DNA of 64,000 bases from Lepidodermella squamata. Lineage: Eukaryota > Animalia > Gastrotricha. Below, in pieces: positions 31,121-45,515 of the stretch. Every line of letters begins with the position of its first letter. The first letter of the stretch is position 1. The notes below the pieces were generated by a model. It saw only the letters and a list, made by a program, of their open reading frames with translations, was not told where the DNA came from and made no database searches. The stretch covers positions 3,968,001 to 4,032,000 of the forward strand of contig JBLDXI010000003.1 in NCBI GenBank assembly GCA_047495785.1, in the 5' to 3' direction. A program made the translations under genes and the position numbers.

Positions 31121-33281
<2,161 letters not shown>

Positions 33282-34812: not shown

Positions 34813-37800
34813 ATGAGCAATAATGTAATTTTTGATTGAAAAACGAAAGAATGAAAAATATCAACACCTTGATGTTTTTAAGGAAAGCCAGCAATCAAAT
34901 TCATTGACCAGCCGCGGCTTGTTTATTTGGACGCCGAGTTACTTTGACAAAAATTTCCAGGCGCGATTTTTCACTAATCGCCTAATTGACGGCTTGGTCG
35001 ACGCTGGCCTGCCGCTAAATGATTTTTTCTACGATGCAAAGGAACGGCTGTACGAAAATGCCATGCGATGTTCATCACGAATGCGCGTATGTTATTATTA
35101 CAATATACGCCAATAAAATTGCCGCCAACAATATTTGACTCGAGAAAAAAATTGCCGAACAATTAAAAATTCCGCCTTATTTTTTTGCGCGCGTTATTTT
35201 CTTCTCAGGGTGTTTACTCATTAGATAATCTGGGGGTTGGAGTTGTTACATTGGCGAGCAAAATAACAAGATGCATCATGGAGGTTGTGTTTTATATACA
35301 TTTATGCACGTAGGCTGTGGAGCGGTGCCAAGCGGCCATTGTGTTTTTGCTATGGCCTGCTGGAGAGCCAGCGAGCCCTGCGCTGCTATCGGTGAATGAA
35401 CTCGCTGAATTAGGCGTGCTGTGCCAGCGCTCGATGCCACCGCAGCAGCAGCCGCAACAACACTCGAGCGATGCGAGGCTGATTAAGCTCTTTGTTGTGT
35501 GCTGCCACGAGCCGATGCAAACGTCGCTCCTGCCGCCCAGTCTCAACTACGCACTGACACTGGCGGGGCGCTACTCGGTCGTGCGAGTGCCGTGGGCGCC
35601 TAGCGAGCCAACGTTGACAACCAGCCAGCTGCGCGAGATGGCCGGCGCGGTCTCTGGCGAGCTGCTCACTCTCGGCTTGTCCGAGTGGTGCCGGGTAATG
35701 CCCATGCATAAGATGATAATGTGATTATAATGGTAGAGTTATTACCAGGCACCGTCCAGCACGGCGAGTCGAGCGGCTTGGCTAACAAGCGGCAGCCGCT
35801 CTTCGAACCATCAGCGCGACGCTCTTGAGTTTAAAGTGCCGAGCTCTGGTGCCGAGTCGCGCGAGAATAACACGACGGCGACGGGCGATGGCGAAAGTGG
35901 CGACGCGGAAACGTCGGAGGAAAAGCCGCGTAGTGAAGAGCCGCCCGACTGGAAGTCGACCCCGGTTGCTGAATGGACCCCGGCCATGGTTCTGCAGTAT
36001 CTCGCCAGTGCCCGCGTTCCTGAGTTCATTTCCATGAGGTTGATAATTTTGCTTTACATTACAAAACTACTTAATTCCTATGGTCTTCAAGATCTTCAAG
36101 CTTGCATTAGAAGTGAAAAATACGCTGAAAATTTCACTGTCACTAGGATAAAAAAGCGACAGAAATTTAAAAAAAACTGGAAAAAAACGAAAAAAATGAA
36201 ATTTGAAGTAAAGAGTAGCCGATATTATAGTTCTTCATTTCATATGAATTTGAGGTATTTGAAAAAATTGAAAAAATTCATCAGAAATCAGCAGCTCAGA
36301 TTCTCTGCATATAATGAATTTTCTGCATAGAAGAATTAATTTTTGCCTCAACCGATTGAATTTTTATTATTTCAATATTATTCGATTCAGGATTGAAGAG
36401 CTTGCACTCGATGGTTCGGAGATTTCAGTGATGGAAGTGGCTGATTTCAGCTCTCACGTGCTCATCGACAACATGGAACTGTGCCGCATTCTGCACAAGA
36501 AAATACGCCAGCACATACAGTCGGCTCAATTGCTGAGTGCTTTCTCGTACAACGCAAATAAACGACAATTACCGCTTGTTTACGTTATTTTCGACCCTCG
36601 CGACGCCAAGTTGGCTCACAAGTTGCGCCGGCAGCTCGAGAAATTACAATTTGAAGTATGTAAACGAGAGAGATATAAACCCAAGTGACGGGAAAAAACC
36701 GCGAATATTTTGTTTTATTACATTAAGGTGCATCACCATGGTCAACTAGGCCGGTCGCGCACCGAATTCGCGCTCACGCAACTGCCGATAATGGCAAAGT
36801 GCGCTTATTTTCTCGTCTTGTTGACCGAGACCGCTCTTTCGTCGCCGTTTATTTGGGAAGAAGTGTGTATTTTGCGCTCGGTTATTCAACCACCAGCCTC
36901 GGCCGTCATTGCCCTGTCGTGGAACATCGGGGCTAGTTTTTTCCCGAGACATCTTTTCCTACCGCAAGGCTTCAATAACATCCAAATCAATCGCCGCGGG
37001 GCTGTGGAGTCGGATATTGTGATTCCTGTCTCGCCATTGTAAGTGTTTTTGCTACTAAGTAGCTATAATAATATGTATCGCGCACTTCACGGTCGATTTA
37101 ATCCCAATTTTTGAACATTAAATCGATAAGAAGCATACCACTTACGTGCGTGGGCGTAAATTAAAACTTACATTAAAAACGTAAAAAAAATGAAAATAAT
37201 ACATTTAATATGAAGCGGCTATTAGCGCTAAACCATCCAATTTAGGATCAGACGTCTACAAAATAATTTGATTTTTTTAATACTATATATAGATCAATAA
37301 ATTCTGAAGAATAAATTGATCAAAATCACGGTTAGATGAAAAAAAGATTTTTTCCAAATTAAACGAACAATTTGAGTTTCATGAATTTACAGAACAAAAT
37401 TTACAAACTGATTGGACTTGAATTATTTTTCAATTAAATTCTAAATTGTAAATTTTGGCTTGAGAATAATTAGCCAAATAAATGAAAATAACTGAAATAA
37501 TATTTTCAAATTTTCTTCTGATACTAAGACAACGTCAATCGAGACCATTTGTTCCAGATTACCAAGTTCAAGTGCGATATCAAGGCTAGGTTCCTGAGTT
37601 CCATCCAATATTAGACTAAGTATTTGCATTCTTTTCGGCTTCGTTCATAATATTTCCAATTTTAATGATTTTATCTCAACTGCATTGACATTTGAAAAAA
37701 ATTAGTTTATACTAGTTTAGACTAGAATATCATTTTTCAATATAATTTTCAGAAATACAATGCTAGAAATAGTCGTCCGGACTCGAAAAATAATATCGTG

Positions 37801-38705
37801 AATTTCTTTGCAGAATTTTGATGTTGGCTGACGTTCAAAACATTCCGCTGCTTGTTCAAGTTGAACTTTCAACAGCTGTTTACAAGATCTGCCGTCTCGT
37901 TGAATCTGCTATTCGATCACCGCCGCCTGGCATCGTGCTCGACCGCCCTGTCACCGGCGAGTACAACGACGTGCTTGCTCCAAACGCTGCCAACTGTGAT
38001 TCACTCATCTTTCAGCCAGTGCTATCGAGCATTGGAATCGGTGGAAGCTCACTTATGGCTAATTCGCCGAAAACTACGGGCCGATTCGGTTATTTGATCT
38101 CAAATTTCCTGCAACCGTTGCCGAGTGAAAACGGCTCGACCCCGGCATTTTCTGACCCGAGGATGCAGCTGTTGAATTCAGTTTACATATCACCCCCGAT
38201 TGATATTGTCATTTTATGCGACTGGGCCGATGCTAAAACCGCGGCTGTCCCGCTGCTGACGTCGCTTCGAAACGCCGGTCTGCGGTGTTTTGCCGACTTT
38301 GAAAATCCGATCGGCTCGCAGACCGCGAATGCCGCCATAGTTCCGAAATCTCGTCTTCGCCTGTTACTAGTAACAGCGTCATCCGGCCATCTGAGACCGT
38401 CCCATCCTCTGCTTTCGGTCGCTATTCTCGAATCACCCATGTCGCCCCTTTTATTTGTCCTGTGCTCTCGATCGCCTATTGCTAACCCAGATGAGCTTCC
38501 CCCTTCGAAAAATATCGCCGTCTCTTCTTCCTCCCAGCATCAAAACCAGCAACAGTTTCCGTACGAGTACTTCAACGGGCCGTTGAATAGCAGCAGCTCT
38601 GTTCCAGCCTACCCGTCAGCCCTTATGCTGGACATGTCGAGCTCGCGGGGAATAACGCGTTTTGTCAACGCGATTTGCCGCTATCTCGGCCACCAAAAAG
38701 ACTGA
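34813..38705 (+). CDS. TIR-SAM-TIR-(TIR) domain protein
   Basis: TIR1: LFIWTPSY...RLIDGLVDAGL...FFYD...MR|AVERCQAAIVFL...NELAEL. SAM: EWTPAMVLQYL...IEELALDGSEI...RILHKKI. TIR2: LVYVIFDPRDAKLAHKLRRQLEKLQFE|V...CAYFLVLLTETALSSPFIWEEV. TIR3-like: IDIVILCDWAD...LLTSLRNAGLRCFAD. In-phase GT-AG joins were checked for the early exons. Confidence 0.7.
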
Positions 38706-39042: not shown

Positions 39043-41691
39043 ATGTCGTCCGATGACGATGAGAAAATGTAACGTCGCTATTGATGCTCGTTCGCTTGTA
39101 TTCTACCTTAATTTATTAACAGTCACGATGTTTCGGCTAAGCCCAAGACAGGATTCTTAGATAGGTTTGGGAAAAAACAAGGTGAGTCGTACAAAAATTA
39201 ACATTCTCTTGAACAAATATGGGTAAAAGGGTTCAACGCGGGACCAGGTCTGCGAACTTGACGCTTGAATGATTGCTTAGTTGCTGCATATAATATGCGT
39301 AAAACCGGATGAGAGTCGAACACGCGAGTTATTAAAGCAGCTCGAAATATTTACAATTACTAGTATAGAGTAGGGCCAGGTGCGATGAGCGAAAACAAAC
39401 GCTGATGAGCCATGAATTGCCCAATTTCAACTTACGGTTTATACTTAGTAGCTATTTTACTCACTGAAAAATGCCGCGTTATTGGCACTGACAAGTCACA
39501 TTTGTGACAAAGCTTTTTACTGATCTTAATATTGCCACGAAATATAGGTAGCGTAAATTGTAGGGAACATGGAGCGATACTAGGTGCCTGCTGCTAGTTT
39601 AAAATAATGCTTACAAAAGAAGCGGTTGCTTCTTGGATCAAAGAGAAGGGCCACAACCTTTCCTCGTTGCCCATCAGCGCGCCTAGTTTGCACAGCCTCG
39701 GGCCAGCTAGACCGTTCAAATTCCGATTCTCTTCCAAACACGCTTCGGACGATGGCGTCGAAATGAGCATTCCTGCCGTCCCTCGTTCTAGCAGTGGCAT
39801 CAATTTGAGCTCTTTAACTCGTACGTGCCCACGAAAAGTCGCTCCCATTTAGAATCCAACTAGCTAATGATTAAAAGATATAGAAAATTCCTAATTTTAT
39901 TTAAAATATTTCAGAGCCTGCCGCCGATACAGGATTCGGTCTGCCAAGTATGCCAAATGAGATCATTCGCAAGTACCAGCGAGGAGTTGAATTTCGGGCT
40001 AAGCTTATCGGCTCTGACACGGTGCCATCGGCAAAGGGCGACAACATGTGCCACACAGCTCTCGCCAAGTTGAAAGCTGCGGTTCAGGTGGCGAAGCAGC
40101 ACAAGCCCAAGCTGATTATTAAAATCACCGACAAGGAACTGCGATTGCTGGACCAAGATACCAGGGTCAGTTCTTGACAATTTTTGCTCAAATGAGTGTT
40201 CATTTTCATCATCCCCGTCCTACAGACCGATTTACACATCCACAAACTGTACAAAATTTCCTACATTGTCTCGGATCCCAACGATCGAAGGGCATTCGGT
40301 GAGCTGAGTCCTGAATTCAGCTTTCATTTCAAGTTACTCCCGAATTTTTTAGGTTATGTATATGGCGAAAAAGAAGGTCCATGGACCTTTTACGGAATTA
40401 AAACTGAAGGAGCGGTAAGGAATCTTGCTGACAAAGTTAAAATAGATTTATTCTTTACGTTATGTAGGCGATAGCTACTATCATGGCTATAAAGGAGCTG
40501 TTTGAAGCTCTGGCTTCTAGGAAGAACGACGAGGATGAATCGAAAGCCGAGAAGAAGCTGGACGAGACCGATGCGAAGCCAGCAGCCAAAGAGGAAAAAT
40601 CAGAGAAAACAGAGAAAACAGAGGCTGCGGAAGAGAAGAAAGATGAACCTCCGAGCAGGCCTGCTCCGAAAGCGGAGGCCCCAGCAGCAGCCGCGGCTTT
40701 ATCTGAGAACAAGCGACCTAGCGTTGAAGACATGTTGCTGGCTATCGATTCCGGTACCAGCTCAGACCAGCCTTCGTTACAGCCGCGATCATCGGCGGAT
40801 TTCAGCTCACTTGAAGCTCCCGCAGCAGAGCAGCCGAAATCGGTTCAAGATGTGTTGAGCGACCTGTTCGCCGTAATTATTTTTAAGTTTAGTTGAATTC
40901 CACTAAGTTATATGTTTAGACGGCATCGCTTAACAACCAAGCTCAAAGCGCTCAACCGATTCCTTTCTCGTCGTCTCCGATGCCTGGAGGAGTGACACCA
41001 TTTCCATCGCCGGCGCCTGGTTTCTTCCCAGCTAACCCTCAATGTGAGTCGGGAATTATTTGCTAAACTAACTATAATTGGATTTTTAGATGGAAACCCG
41101 ATGTATGGCAACGTTCCATTCGGTGCTTACCCGACTCAACCTACGCAGTTCTATGGACAACCTGGCATTCCAGCGACCTATGGCAACATGGTTCAAGGAT
41201 TCGGATTCGCCAATCCTATGCAACCGGCTAGTCCGTTCGGGGTCAACCGCTTCCCAGCACCTACCCTGCAACAGCGTAAGAGTTTGAAACCAAATTGAGA
41301 GAAATGTTGACCTTTTTGAATTATTGCCAGCTTTTGGTGGATTCGGCCAGCCTTTCCCTGCCGCCGCCGATAATAGCCTTGACGCGACGAATGCGTTGAC
41401 GCCTCAGCTGGCTGCTAACGCCCCTGTCCCAACGGCGCCGGCTCCTCGAGCTGCGGCACCTACGAACACTGGTGCGAGCAACACTTGGTCATTTGTAGGC
41501 ACTGGACTGCCGCCGAAACAAGACCCAGGGCTATTCAGCGAATTTCTACCTGGGGACCTTGAAGCCGCGGCGGCGAGCAAGCCTCAAACAGGAAGTTATG
41601 TTCCGATGGGTGAAATGCTGAACAACGGTAATATTTCAGTTTCAAAATGTTCAATAATTAAGTTAATTTTATAGGTGGAAACAATAACTGA
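39043..41691 (+). CDS. DAB: Disabled (Dab) PTB-domain adaptor
   Basis: GVEFRAKLIGSDTVPSAKGDNMC...LKAA...HKPK...KISYI..D..DRRAFG|YVYG...GIKT...IKELF matches the Dab PTB domain; Pro/Ala/Phe-rich tail; many short introns. Confidence 0.9.
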
Positions 41692-43087: not shown

Positions 43088-44727
43088 GTATAAATCCCGA
43101 AACGGCGGCTGCTTTCAGCATTCAGCCTGCTCATCCCGCGCTCGGTGTTTTGAAAGAATGGGAAAAACGCTTGCGCGCGCGCAACCTGGCTGCTGTAGCC
43201 GATATAAGCAGAGTGAACTGTTGTGTAGCTATTGTTATATGAAAAATCACAACAGCTTTTAAGGAGGCTAATACCTTTACACGTTATGCTATACCGACCC
43301 CACCACTTCCGCAGCGAGTATAGTTGCCGATGTACCCCTAACACGCAAAAAACATGGATAAAAAAATATAGCGACGCTCAATTTTCCATATCCGCGCGCC
43401 TACGAGCGATACAATAATAATATTTTACATCTTTTCGAACGATTTTTCCTCGAAAAAAAACCGGGATAACGATATACTGTTTCAGCACGCGAACTCGGTA
43501 CTCGGGTATTTATTTTGATCGCTTCAAATTTTATAACCGCTGACGTGTATCGAATAACACCAGCCGTTGCGAGACACGCAAATAATGTTGTCGCTTAATT
43601 ATTTGGCACTTGATCCATTTTCTCATTTTGACATATCAACTTTCCAGAAAAACGTCTCCGGGGCCTGATCGGAGTCTGACGACAACGTTGCGTGACTAAT
43701 TTTTACGCGAGTTATTTTGCATGCTATCGAGCCATCTATCGTTGCCAACTTCTACAACTCAAGTTTCTACCCTAAATTTCATATAATATAATTTGGATAG
43801 CATGAGACGATGGGGCTTAATTTTTTAATTCGTTGAAATTCCATGGAGAACGTTCATTTGGGGGCTCGGTGCAAATTGGTAATTTTCGATGTCGCCGCAT
43901 CGAATTTTCGGCGGCGCACTATCCTGCCACACTTATTGACTAACCTGGGCCTCAGTAATTATTTTAAAATAAATAGCCATGTTGTTTTAGTTAATAACCA
44001 TGTACACACAATAATCAGAATTATTTCGCGACATAGGTATAGAACTAGTCAAACACACTCGCAGAGAACGAGCGAAAATCGATGGCCATAGGCGTATTTT
44101 TGGTATTTTTAATCGGTATAAACCGAATATTTACGTACAGGGCTTGTTCTATGATGTTTTTTGGTGCTGAGGGACCGTGCGCTTTTAAATCGATCATAGA
44201 TGCCGCCATTTCTAGCACATACACGTGATTTTTCTCGTCATAGCTATCCTCGAGAGGTGTCACAGCTCTTTGTTTCCATGTCAGAGAATGCCGATTATTC
44301 CTTTTACTTTAATTACTTTCCGAGCCATGGACGTCAATAATAAGGCACAGTTTTCATAATATCACAGTCAATGGACTTGCATGTGGGCAGAACTGCCCGG
44401 TATTTTTTGCCGTCTCAGATGACGCGGAAGTAAAAAACTACGCTTAATACTTGCTATAATCCCTACAACCGCATTATATATTGAGCTGAGGTCGCGCGGA
44501 TGTGATAATTTGCATCGCCCAAATAGAGACTATGCCTTCGCGTATCACATACAGGTATACAGGTACATGACATCAGCGAAAAAACTGCTCATGCACTGCA
44601 AACATATGCTAGAGTAGAAAAAAGTTGACATGTGCTGCTCGCTGATCCTAAAATTTAATTCATAGTTTCTCCCACTACATTTTATAGGTGATTTTTCAGA
44701 TTTAATTATTTGCGCAACCTCTGAGAG

Positions 44728-45515
44728 ATGGGAAACAAGCGCAGTAAGCTGGCGCCGGAGGAGCTGAAGGACCTGTCAAAAGAGACCATGTTCACGGAGG
44801 AGGAAATCCGAGAGTGGTACAAAGGCTTCTCGAAGGATTGCCCCACTGGCAACCTTTCGATCGAAGAGTTCAAGAAAATCTACAGCAACTTCTTCCCGTA
44901 TGGAGATGCATCAAAATTCGCCGAGCACGTCTTTCGCACCTTCGACAAGAATGGCGACGGTACGATCGATTTCCGCGAATTCATCTCCGCCCTATCAGTC
45001 ACTTCAAGGGGCAATGTCGATCAGAAATTAAGATGGTAAGCTTAATCTCAGAATAATTTTTCAGCTCAAGTTGGAAACATCGATTACACAATGAAAGCTG
45101 AATGCTGATTTTTTTTGTTCCAGGGCTTTTGCGATGTATGACTTGGACAAGAATGGTTACATTTCAAGGCAAGAAATGCTCGAAATTATTAGCGTAAGTA
45201 TTTCATGTGATTGACGCATTTATTTTGTAATTTCCTATTTTATTTTGCAGAGTATTTACCGAATGGTAGGCTCGATGATGCATTTACCAGAGGATGAAGC
45301 GACTCCAGAATTGAGGACGGAAAAAATCTTCAGGCAGATGGATCTCAACCTCGACGACAAGCTTTCCCTCGACGGTAAGGACGTTTAAATTCTGCCAAAT
45401 TCTGTCAAATATTTACCCCGTATTTTATATAGAATTCATCGCCGGCGCGAAAGCCGATCCATCTATCGTAAAACTCCTAACGTGTGATCCCTCTGCTTTG
45501 CCCGCGTCTGAATAA
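44728..45515 (+). CDS. Neurocalcin/hippocalcin-like neuronal calcium sensor
   Basis: MGNKRSKL myristoylation motif, [55 protein letters not shown] hands; four exons. Confidence 0.95.

Follow-up and report, generated by a model that had tools for sequence, protein, structure and literature searches.

A divergent gastrotrich orthologue of an uncharacterised animal protein family with the layout TIR-SAM-TIR-TIR

We analysed a stretch of 64,000 nucleotides from the genome of the gastrotrich Lepidodermella squamata (C3:3968001-4032000, here called the window, within an assembly of 121 Mb and 151 contigs), and in particular a gene encoding a protein with TIR-type units arranged around a single SAM domain. 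On the forward strand, open segments lying in a row from 34.8 to 38.7 kb are linked by GT-AG sites into seven exons, giving a coding sequence of 2367 nt, or 788 codons, and a gene spanning positions 34813-38705 (Table 1). The introns, of 58, 227, 42, 352, 72 and 775 nt, are all of the GT-AG type and all fit in phase, with both phase-2 donors found at the exon junctions to be paired with phase-2 acceptors. The 788-residue product consists, in order, of TIR1, a linker, the SAM domain, TIR2, a further linker and a third alpha/beta unit. A first-pass annotation of this DNA had given exactly the same end coordinates, and the motifs that it quoted, SVNELAEL and SPFIWEEV, are both present. The only change made to the earlier model was that the start of exon 4 was set to 35737, because the SRAAWL motif right behind that acceptor is kept in the orthologue described below. 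Of the whole model, exon 1 is the most tentative and the sole part lacking independent support, its status as an exon not being confirmed by conservation. No transmembrane segment was found, with the top 19-residue Kyte-Doolittle score of 1.87 falling in a strand/helix core that contains Glu and Pro, and Pfam gave no ARM match, which bears out the proposal that the protein has no transmembrane, leucine-rich repeat or ARM region. All searches and structure predictions reported here were run on single exons or on contiguous open reading frames (ORFs).

Table 1. Exons and elements of the TIR-SAM gene and its neighbouring genes, in window coordinates, with matches of the exons to the family hidden Markov model (HMM).
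Feature	Position	Strand	Content	Match to family HMM
Exon 1	34813-34824	+	Proposed ATG start and three codons (MSNN), GTAATT donor, followed by a 58-nt intron, phase 0	
Exon 2	34883-35086	+	First part of TIR1: betaA, alphaA, betaB	TIR1, E 0.011, HMM positions 85-161
betaA of TIR1	34919-34942	+	LFIWTPSY	
Exon 3	35314-35694	+	Remainder of TIR1; distal helix with SxxREM..V.G.L motif	TIR1, E 0.4
betaC of TIR1	35314-35349	+	AVERCQAAIVFL	
Acidic motif of TIR1	35389-35412	+	SVNELAEL	
Poly-Q insert	35437-35460	+	In exon 3; lineage-specific, absent from family TIR1	
Exon 4	35737-36038	+	Ser/acidic linker and first half of SAM; preceded by a 42-nt intron; ends in phase 2	SAM, E 0.09, colinear, weak
SAM motif	35974-35991	+	WTPAMV	
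Exon 5	36391-36655	+	Second half of SAM, long connecting helix, betaA-alphaA of TIR2	SAM/TIR2, E 3e-9
TIR2 motif	36578-36604	+	VYVIFDPRD	
Exon 6	36728-37038	+	Core of TIR2; ends in phase 2	TIR2, E 2e-12
BB-loop of TIR2	36743-36769	+	QLGRSRTEF	
alphaC of TIR2	36842-36865	+	SPFIWEEV	
Exon 7, whole	37814-38705	+	End of TIR2, linker, third unit, stop codon	No hit
Exon 7, first part	37814-38162	+	Probable last TIR2 helix and inter-TIR linker	
Linker motif	37923-37943	+	PPGIVLD, resembling family VPGVVLEQ	
Exon 7, second part	38163-38705	+	Third alpha/beta unit (degenerate TIR3), then stop codon	
betaA of TIR3	38199-38225	+	IDIVILCDW	
TIR3 element	38283-38300	+	RCFADF	
TIR3 element	38385-38408	+	GHLRPSHP, replacing family NCxKD	
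betaD of TIR3	38448-38465	+	In second part of exon 7	
Last helix of TIR3	38658-38690	+	In second part of exon 7	
CDC14-type dual-specificity phosphatase gene	31121-32720	+	Upstream; DSPn and DSPc domains; 85-92% identical to L001	
Unnamed gene	39920-41574	+	Downstream, conserved in L001; the exon searched with Pfam gave no match	
Calmodulin-like EF-hand gene	44723-45506	+	Downstream; 92-100% identical to L001	

A word search with exon 7 gave a single relative, P0001, with 52% identity, full-length kin being outside the length window of that search, and P0001 was located on the metagenome contigs L001-L004. The contig L001 is syntenic with the window, carrying a CDC14-type phosphatase gene, the TIR-SAM gene, an unnamed gene and an EF-hand gene. 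Because protein identity to L001 is only about 55% for the TIR-SAM gene, against 85-92% for the neighbouring genes, the TIR-SAM gene must be regarded as fast-evolving. All of its exons except the unconfirmed exon 1 are conserved on L001 (exon 2 with 61-71% identity), and exons 4, 5 and 6 correspond there to a single ORF of 310 codons, thereby ruling out that these three exons belong to separate transcripts. The exons furthermore follow the same order as full-length proteins from other phyla, so that the concern raised in the first-pass annotation, that its exons might derive from separate transcripts, met with evidence of the opposite kind. When the L001 ORF was searched against the 121-Mb assembly, it recovered exon 5 (4.6e-22) and exon 6 (6.3e-29), and the gene was found to be single-copy. 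The locus is one intact gene that encodes a cytosolic protein.

Using the SAM and TIR2 part of the L001 ORF, a phmmer search yielded 16 proteins (E 1e-16 to 2e-6) from, among others, Diadema, Mya arenaria, Nematostella, Dimorphilus, lungfish and paddlefish, several of them full-length at 675-756 residues. In the full-length relatives, Pfam recognised a TIR_2 domain at the N-terminus, SAM_1/SAM_2 behind it and two further TIR_2 domains, weak in the middle and strong at the C-terminus. Starting from the Mya protein, a word search gave 108 members, nearly all named 'uncharacterized' and two 'Bf-TIR-SAM-like', from bivalves, gastropods, Lingula, annelids, a nemertean, a bryozoan, hemichordates, echinoderms, amphioxus, tunicates and the bichir, with some members bearing SARM1-derived names in UniRef. 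The family hence ranges from Cnidaria (Nematostella) to basal fishes (bichir), examples being the proteins of Mya arenaria (XP_052774240, P0009), Nematostella vectensis (XP_001620303, P0011/P0021), Diadema (XP_071510154, P0005), Branchiostoma lanceolatum (Hypp1518, P0057) and Erpetoichthys (LOC127528469, P0085).

A family HMM built from 23 full-length members and run on all stop-to-stop segments between 33 and 40 kb matched only forward-strand exons of the window, with coordinates that rise monotonically from exon 2 to exon 6, while exon 7 could be aligned with the family linker and TIR3 using MAFFT. The similarity to the family thus includes the SAM domain and the middle TIR, and the HMM order, the MAFFT alignment and the splice phases together place TIR1, SAM, TIR2, linker and TIR3 in one polypeptide. 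The window protein has the same colinear order as the Bf-TIR-SAM-like family, the same lack of any transmembrane segment or signal peptide and a similar length (788 residues, with 675-820 in the family), and it shares the motifs AVE(K/R)C(R/Q)AAI and SV(Y/N)E in TIR1 as well as YDPxD, LGxSxxEF and SPFxxxE in TIR2. It differs in being only about 30% identical in SAM and TIR2, and less so elsewhere, and in having TIRs that are invisible to Pfam.

The first-pass annotation had considered the architecture new, a claim that had to be abandoned, as the same colinear layout is found in more than 100 database proteins and a TIR-SAM hybrid gene of amphioxus, for which a cDNA was recovered, was listed already in 2008 (PMC2575513), in a paper from which the name 'Bf-TIR-SAM' presumably stems. 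TIR-SAM-TIR-TIR is the layout of an old, conserved metazoan family with more than 100 database members. Families without an assigned function are described as 'evolutionarily conserved TIR-domain-containing' in later surveys (PMC6321704; PMC8662601), and in our literature search, which did not cover the catalogue of Gerdol et al. 2017, only passing mention of the family and no description of its function was found. In agreement with another remark of the annotation, that the arrangement was not one recognised from characterised animal proteins, we found no characterised member. The gene in the window is a new, very divergent and fast-evolving orthologue of this known but uncharacterised family.

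A few sequences related to the family deviate from its layout. An ORF of another environmental eukaryote, encoding SAM and TIR2 (E 1e-57 to the family HMM), is found at L007:5920-6600, on a 205-kb ENA metagenome contig that is also the contig of P0003, with no recognisable TIR1 or TIR3 up to 6 kb on either side; this contig does not bridge the gap in similarity at TIR3, and the ORF could represent a SAM-TIR2 variant of reduced length, or its flanks could have diverged too far to be recognised. Two further proteins, P0007 (Biomphalaria) and P0008 (MetaClust), have annotated reverse-transcriptase/RNase H tails or a TIR3-type unit first, and look like gene-model chimeras rather than genuine architectures.

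The structures of the SAM domain and TIR2 were predicted using AlphaFold2 (AF2) on the corresponding L001 ORF, with the family as alignment. The model had a mean predicted local distance difference test (pLDDT) score of 79, with values above 90 over the five SAM helices, the long connecting helix and the betaA-alphaA-betaB-alphaB-betaC-alphaC part of TIR2. In an exhaustive VIA search, residues 1-83 of the L001 model matched a SAM domain (Z 11.7, root mean square deviation (rmsd) 1.8 Å), with Z 10.8 to the tandem SAM of SARM1. Residues 91-216 matched TIR domains, namely those of a B. cereus TIR protein (8fz9, Z 10.4), ThsB (6lhy, 9.8), MyD88 (7beq, 9.6), TIRAP (9.5), IL-1RAcPb (9.2), Hydra TRR-2 (9.1) and SARM1 (8.2). 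Foldseek placed C. elegans TIR-1 and human SARM1 first for the same model, followed by isolated SAM domains (rmsd 1.4-2.3 Å), with the alignments to TIR-1 and SARM1 having an rmsd of 12-20 Å because only the separate domains match. The family SAM profile is closest to SAM1 of SARM1 (E ~1e-11).

Structure prediction thus gave two of the domains that the first-pass annotation had expected, SAM and, as a flavodoxin-like TIR fold in the L001 orthologue, TIR2, while the Pfam searches that it had likewise proposed for TIR_2 and SAM failed, no model recognising any exon of the window. The TIR and TIR_2 models of Pfam also gave no match in the contiguous L001 ORF, even at E <= 10. As judged from the model, the middle unit adopts a TIR fold to which sequence models are blind. 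Its invariant family columns cluster in the three segments YDPxD, LGxSxxEFL and SxFxxxE, and almost all of them are kept in the window.

For TIR1, alignment of exon 3 with family TIR1 using hhalign gave an E value of 3.8e-5, with AVERCQAAIVFL aligned with AVEKCRAAIMFL, and exon 2 gave 0.016 to family columns 116-158. A TIR1-only HMM scored exon 2 with 7.4 bits and exon 3 with 7.1 bits, in neither case with any of 1000 shuffles reaching as high. The AVEKCRAAI motif and the invariant Glu of SVYE that typify family TIR1 appear in the window as AVERCQAAI and SVNE, with both Glu residues of SVNELAEL kept in L001. Among known domains, family TIR1 is nearest to the TIRs of MyD88 and IL-1RAcP (~4e-4). 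By sequence comparison, TIR1 is homologous to family TIR1, with a similarity that is weaker than that of SAM and TIR2 but significant. Its coding sequence is interrupted by introns both in the window and in L001.

The third unit is the most weakly supported of all. Its score with the TIR3 HMM was reached by 3 of 1000 shuffles for the window and by 20 of 1000 for L001, and hhalign of exon 7 to family TIR3 gave 0.06, with no gain over the single sequence when using a two-species exon-7 profile (0.059). In the MAFFT alignment the unit is colinear with family TIR3 and keeps several invariant family residues. The apparently 'invariant' columns that MAFFT gave when aligning the first 100 residues of exon 7 with TIR1 and TIR2 columns were judged to be spurious. 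The protein-language-model neighbours of exon 7 residues 117-296 were all TIR_2 clusters (0.93), which we take as a lead only. The AF2 model of the window exon 7 was poor (pLDDT 47) and disordered in its first part, which is 47-48% identical to L001 and whose score with the family linker HMM was reached by 17 of 1000 shuffles. At low confidence, residues 129-290 of that model form the series strand-helix-strand-strand-helix-strand and a later helix, i.e. the order of a TIR without alphaB. Compared with the family, the unit lacks the FISYQWD and TPKYxQSDNCxKD motifs, along with the invariant Asp of the latter, the long BB-loop region is largely missing, and a 45-residue Ser/Gln-rich insert is present; the canonical C-terminal TIR_2 was, in other words, remodelled in place. 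Between the window and L001, however, its structural elements are 73-83% identical against 7-19% for its loops, with a ratio of nonsynonymous to synonymous substitution rates (dN/dS) of about 0.14 at near saturation of dS. The third unit is therefore a constrained and probably folded domain in this lineage, under purifying selection. Of the three TIR-like units around one SAM domain that the first-pass annotation had seen, TIR2 is thus upheld, like the SAM domain itself, by the fold of the orthologue and TIR1 by homology, with the support for the third as a TIR being marginal.

We also compared the units with regards to the acidic residue that may be catalytic. In TIR1, all 23 of the 23 aligned family members have Glu (SVYE), as does the window (SVNE), and in TIR2 the Glu (SPFVFHE) is found in 22 of the 23, including all invertebrate members, with SPFIWEE in the window. 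In TIR3, the family has an invariant Asp (NCxKD) and the window a three-residue deletion with no acidic residue. The family alignment hence agrees with the suggestion in the annotation that a Glu is present at alphaC in TIR1 and TIR2 and absent from TIR3. In the orthologue model, the TIR2 Glu falls within the opening turns of alphaC (helix 161-173), and the SPFIWEEV motif has an aromatic residue at -4, its Phe being four residues before the second Glu; the Glu in SVNE of TIR1 has a non-aromatic Leu at -4, and TIR3 has no such pair. The TIR2 Glu was equated with E642 of SARM1 by motif and helix position, and not by residue-level superposition. The segments YDPxD, LGxSxxEFL and SxFxxxE, situated at the end of betaA, in the BB loop and at the start of alphaC, respectively, line the NAD+ pocket in SARM1 and other TIRs with NAD+-cleaving (NADase) activity. 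NADase activity of TIR2 appears plausible.

With regards to known systems, the window protein resembles SARM1/TIR-1 in that a SAM domain of the SARM1 SAM1 type adjoins a TIR fold with Glu at the start of alphaC, in being cytosolic and in the plausibility of TIR clustering by SAM oligomers; it differs in having no ARM auto-inhibitory domain, a single SAM domain where SARM1 has two and three TIR-type units where SARM1 has one, and in that its TIR2 is not specifically SARM1-like. The TIRs of the MyD88/IL-1RAcP scaffolds are the best sequence match of family TIR1, whose consensus has a FISYS-type betaA, but the window protein has no death domain or receptor part, and its TIR1 has Glu where MyD88 has Gln, as aligned by eye. 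The B. cereus TIR and the Thoeris protein ThsB are the best structural matches of TIR2 over about 98 aligned residues, with an identity of just 11-13% and with Z-scores within 1 unit of those of animal scaffold TIRs.

On balance we favour the reading that the locus holds one intact gene, a fast-evolving orthologue of the TIR-SAM-TIR-TIR family, whose product is probably SAM-assembled around a TIR2 core with a nucleotide pocket. The SAM domain would then oligomerise the protein and bring the TIR units together. TIR2 would be the functional core, kept even in the divergent window copy, as suggested by its conservation in the three NAD+-pocket segments, and upon assembly it would most likely bind, and probably cleave, NAD+ or a related nucleotide, with the MyD88-like TIR1 and the acid-less TIR3 acting as docking or regulatory TIRs. 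The cytosolic protein with several TIRs built around a single SAM domain, as put forward in the first-pass annotation, agrees with the gene model, with the lack of transmembrane segments and with the predicted folds. A more speculative extension, which we offer tentatively, is that the family, this divergent copy included, could provide animals, besides SARM1 and independently of it, with a second TIR nucleotide enzyme oligomerised by SAM. TIR2 would then be catalytic and TIR1 and TIR3 would be built-in regulatory pseudo-enzymes replacing the ARM domain of SARM1, with TIR3 having been remodelled in this lineage while the TIR2 pocket was kept.

Several observations weigh against the favoured reading. 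Exon by exon, neither Pfam (at E <= 1) nor NCBIfam gave a match, in searches whose power is lowered by the exon splitting; genome-wide Pfam scans with TIR_2 and TIR did not have the window locus among their matches; and with the L001 ORFs Pfam found only SAM_PNT, at 2.5e-4 and below its cut-off. Searched by sequence against solved structures, the SAM and TIR2 ORF of L001 had no match, and luffaculin, found there with the TIR2 profile, was rejected as a chance hit, no solved TIR having been found. The TIR2 fold derives from the orthologue model and not from the split exons of the window, with its last third being poorly modelled, and for the exon 7 model Foldseek and VIA gave no match above Z 3.9, a TIR appearing at 2.9. 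As to function, the window protein has no ARM auto-inhibitory domain, the Z-scores are no guide to whether a TIR is enzymatic or a scaffold, and a Glu at the alphaC position is also found in non-enzymatic Toll-like receptor (TLR) TIRs. Basal ray-finned and lobe-finned fish members, i.e. that of bichir (P0085) and the fragments from lungfish (P0015) and paddlefish (P0010), have Gln in place of Glu in TIR2.

The protein could instead be a pure scaffold, with SAM-clustered TIRs recruiting TLR/MyD88-type partners by cooperative TIR-TIR assembly and with none of the units being enzymatic, which we consider a genuine possibility. Family TIR1 being nearest to the MyD88 and IL-1RAcP TIRs would agree with this, as would the structural matches of TIR2 to MyD88, TIRAP, TRAM and TRIF as well as to enzymatic TIRs, the Gln of the fish members, the presence in TIR3 of an Asp in the family and nothing acidic in the window, and the adaptor or regulator roles that surveys propose for conserved invertebrate TIR proteins (PMC6321704). 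Against a scaffold stand the TIR1 Glu, which does not vary in members ranging from Cnidaria to chordates, the TIR2 Glu, present in all invertebrate members, the concentration of the strongest conservation in loops that, in enzymatic TIRs, line the nucleotide pocket, and the SARM1 type of the SAM domain. With the Z-scores being tied between bacterial enzymatic and animal scaffold TIRs, the fold gives no functional assignment, and since a Glu is insufficient for activity, the fish members lack that of TIR2 and the fold scores favour neither reading, we hold a scaffold without enzymatic activity to be almost as likely as the reading that we favour.

Two further explanations appear much less probable. 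That the gene would be the SARM1/TIR-1 orthologue of this animal, or a domain-permuted SARM1, is suggested by the first rank of the TIR-1 and SARM1 chains in Foldseek, by the best match of the SAM profile and by the SARM1-derived names in UniRef, but we find it most improbable, as it is contradicted by the architecture. The protein starts with TIR1 and has no N-terminal ARM repeats, the next gene upstream being that of the CDC14-type phosphatase; it has only one SAM domain, in place of a tandem as used for an octameric ring; and it has three TIR-type units. The SARM1 TIR, with Z 8.2 against a top value of 10.4, also ranked below the TIRs of bacteria and of MyD88, the Foldseek alignments covered separate domains only, and the bichir carries the TIR-SAM-TIR-TIR family too, vertebrates having SARM1. 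Of the 'SARM1-like' label given in the first-pass annotation, the SAM domain is consequently what remains. It is also highly improbable that the locus is not one functional gene, be it separate transcripts or a decaying pseudogene with terminal units that are no longer domains. TIR1 and TIR3 do escape Pfam and exon 7 was poorly modelled by AF2, but all frames are open, all splice phases fit, exons 4-6 are fused in one ORF of the orthologue, the exon order is colinear with full-length family proteins and the TIR3 elements are conserved between two species at near saturation of dS.

Separately from the TIR-SAM gene, the assembly was found to contain a large expansion of TIR genes. At least 85 other six-frame TIR_2 matches were seen, many of them in tandem clusters, with sites such as C19:1.08-1.14 Mb, C32:1.88-2.00 Mb, C33:1.14 Mb and C25:1.60 Mb, and some of the matches on C32 lie inside open frames of 2,400-2,600 codons.

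The gene studied here is in itself an ordinary, if very divergent, orthologue, and its architecture is no discovery. SARM1 is described as the sole enzymatically active animal TIR protein known before the 'Raw' report (PMC13455253). The TIR-SAM-TIR-TIR family is as old as SARM1, has a SAM domain of the same type and carries three TIR units with deeply conserved Glu residues. The divergent copy in Lepidodermella squamata serves as a natural 'minimal constraint' experiment, in which the SAM domain, the pocket motifs of TIR2 and the Glu of TIR1 stay fixed, and this pattern of conserved residues points to the site of function.

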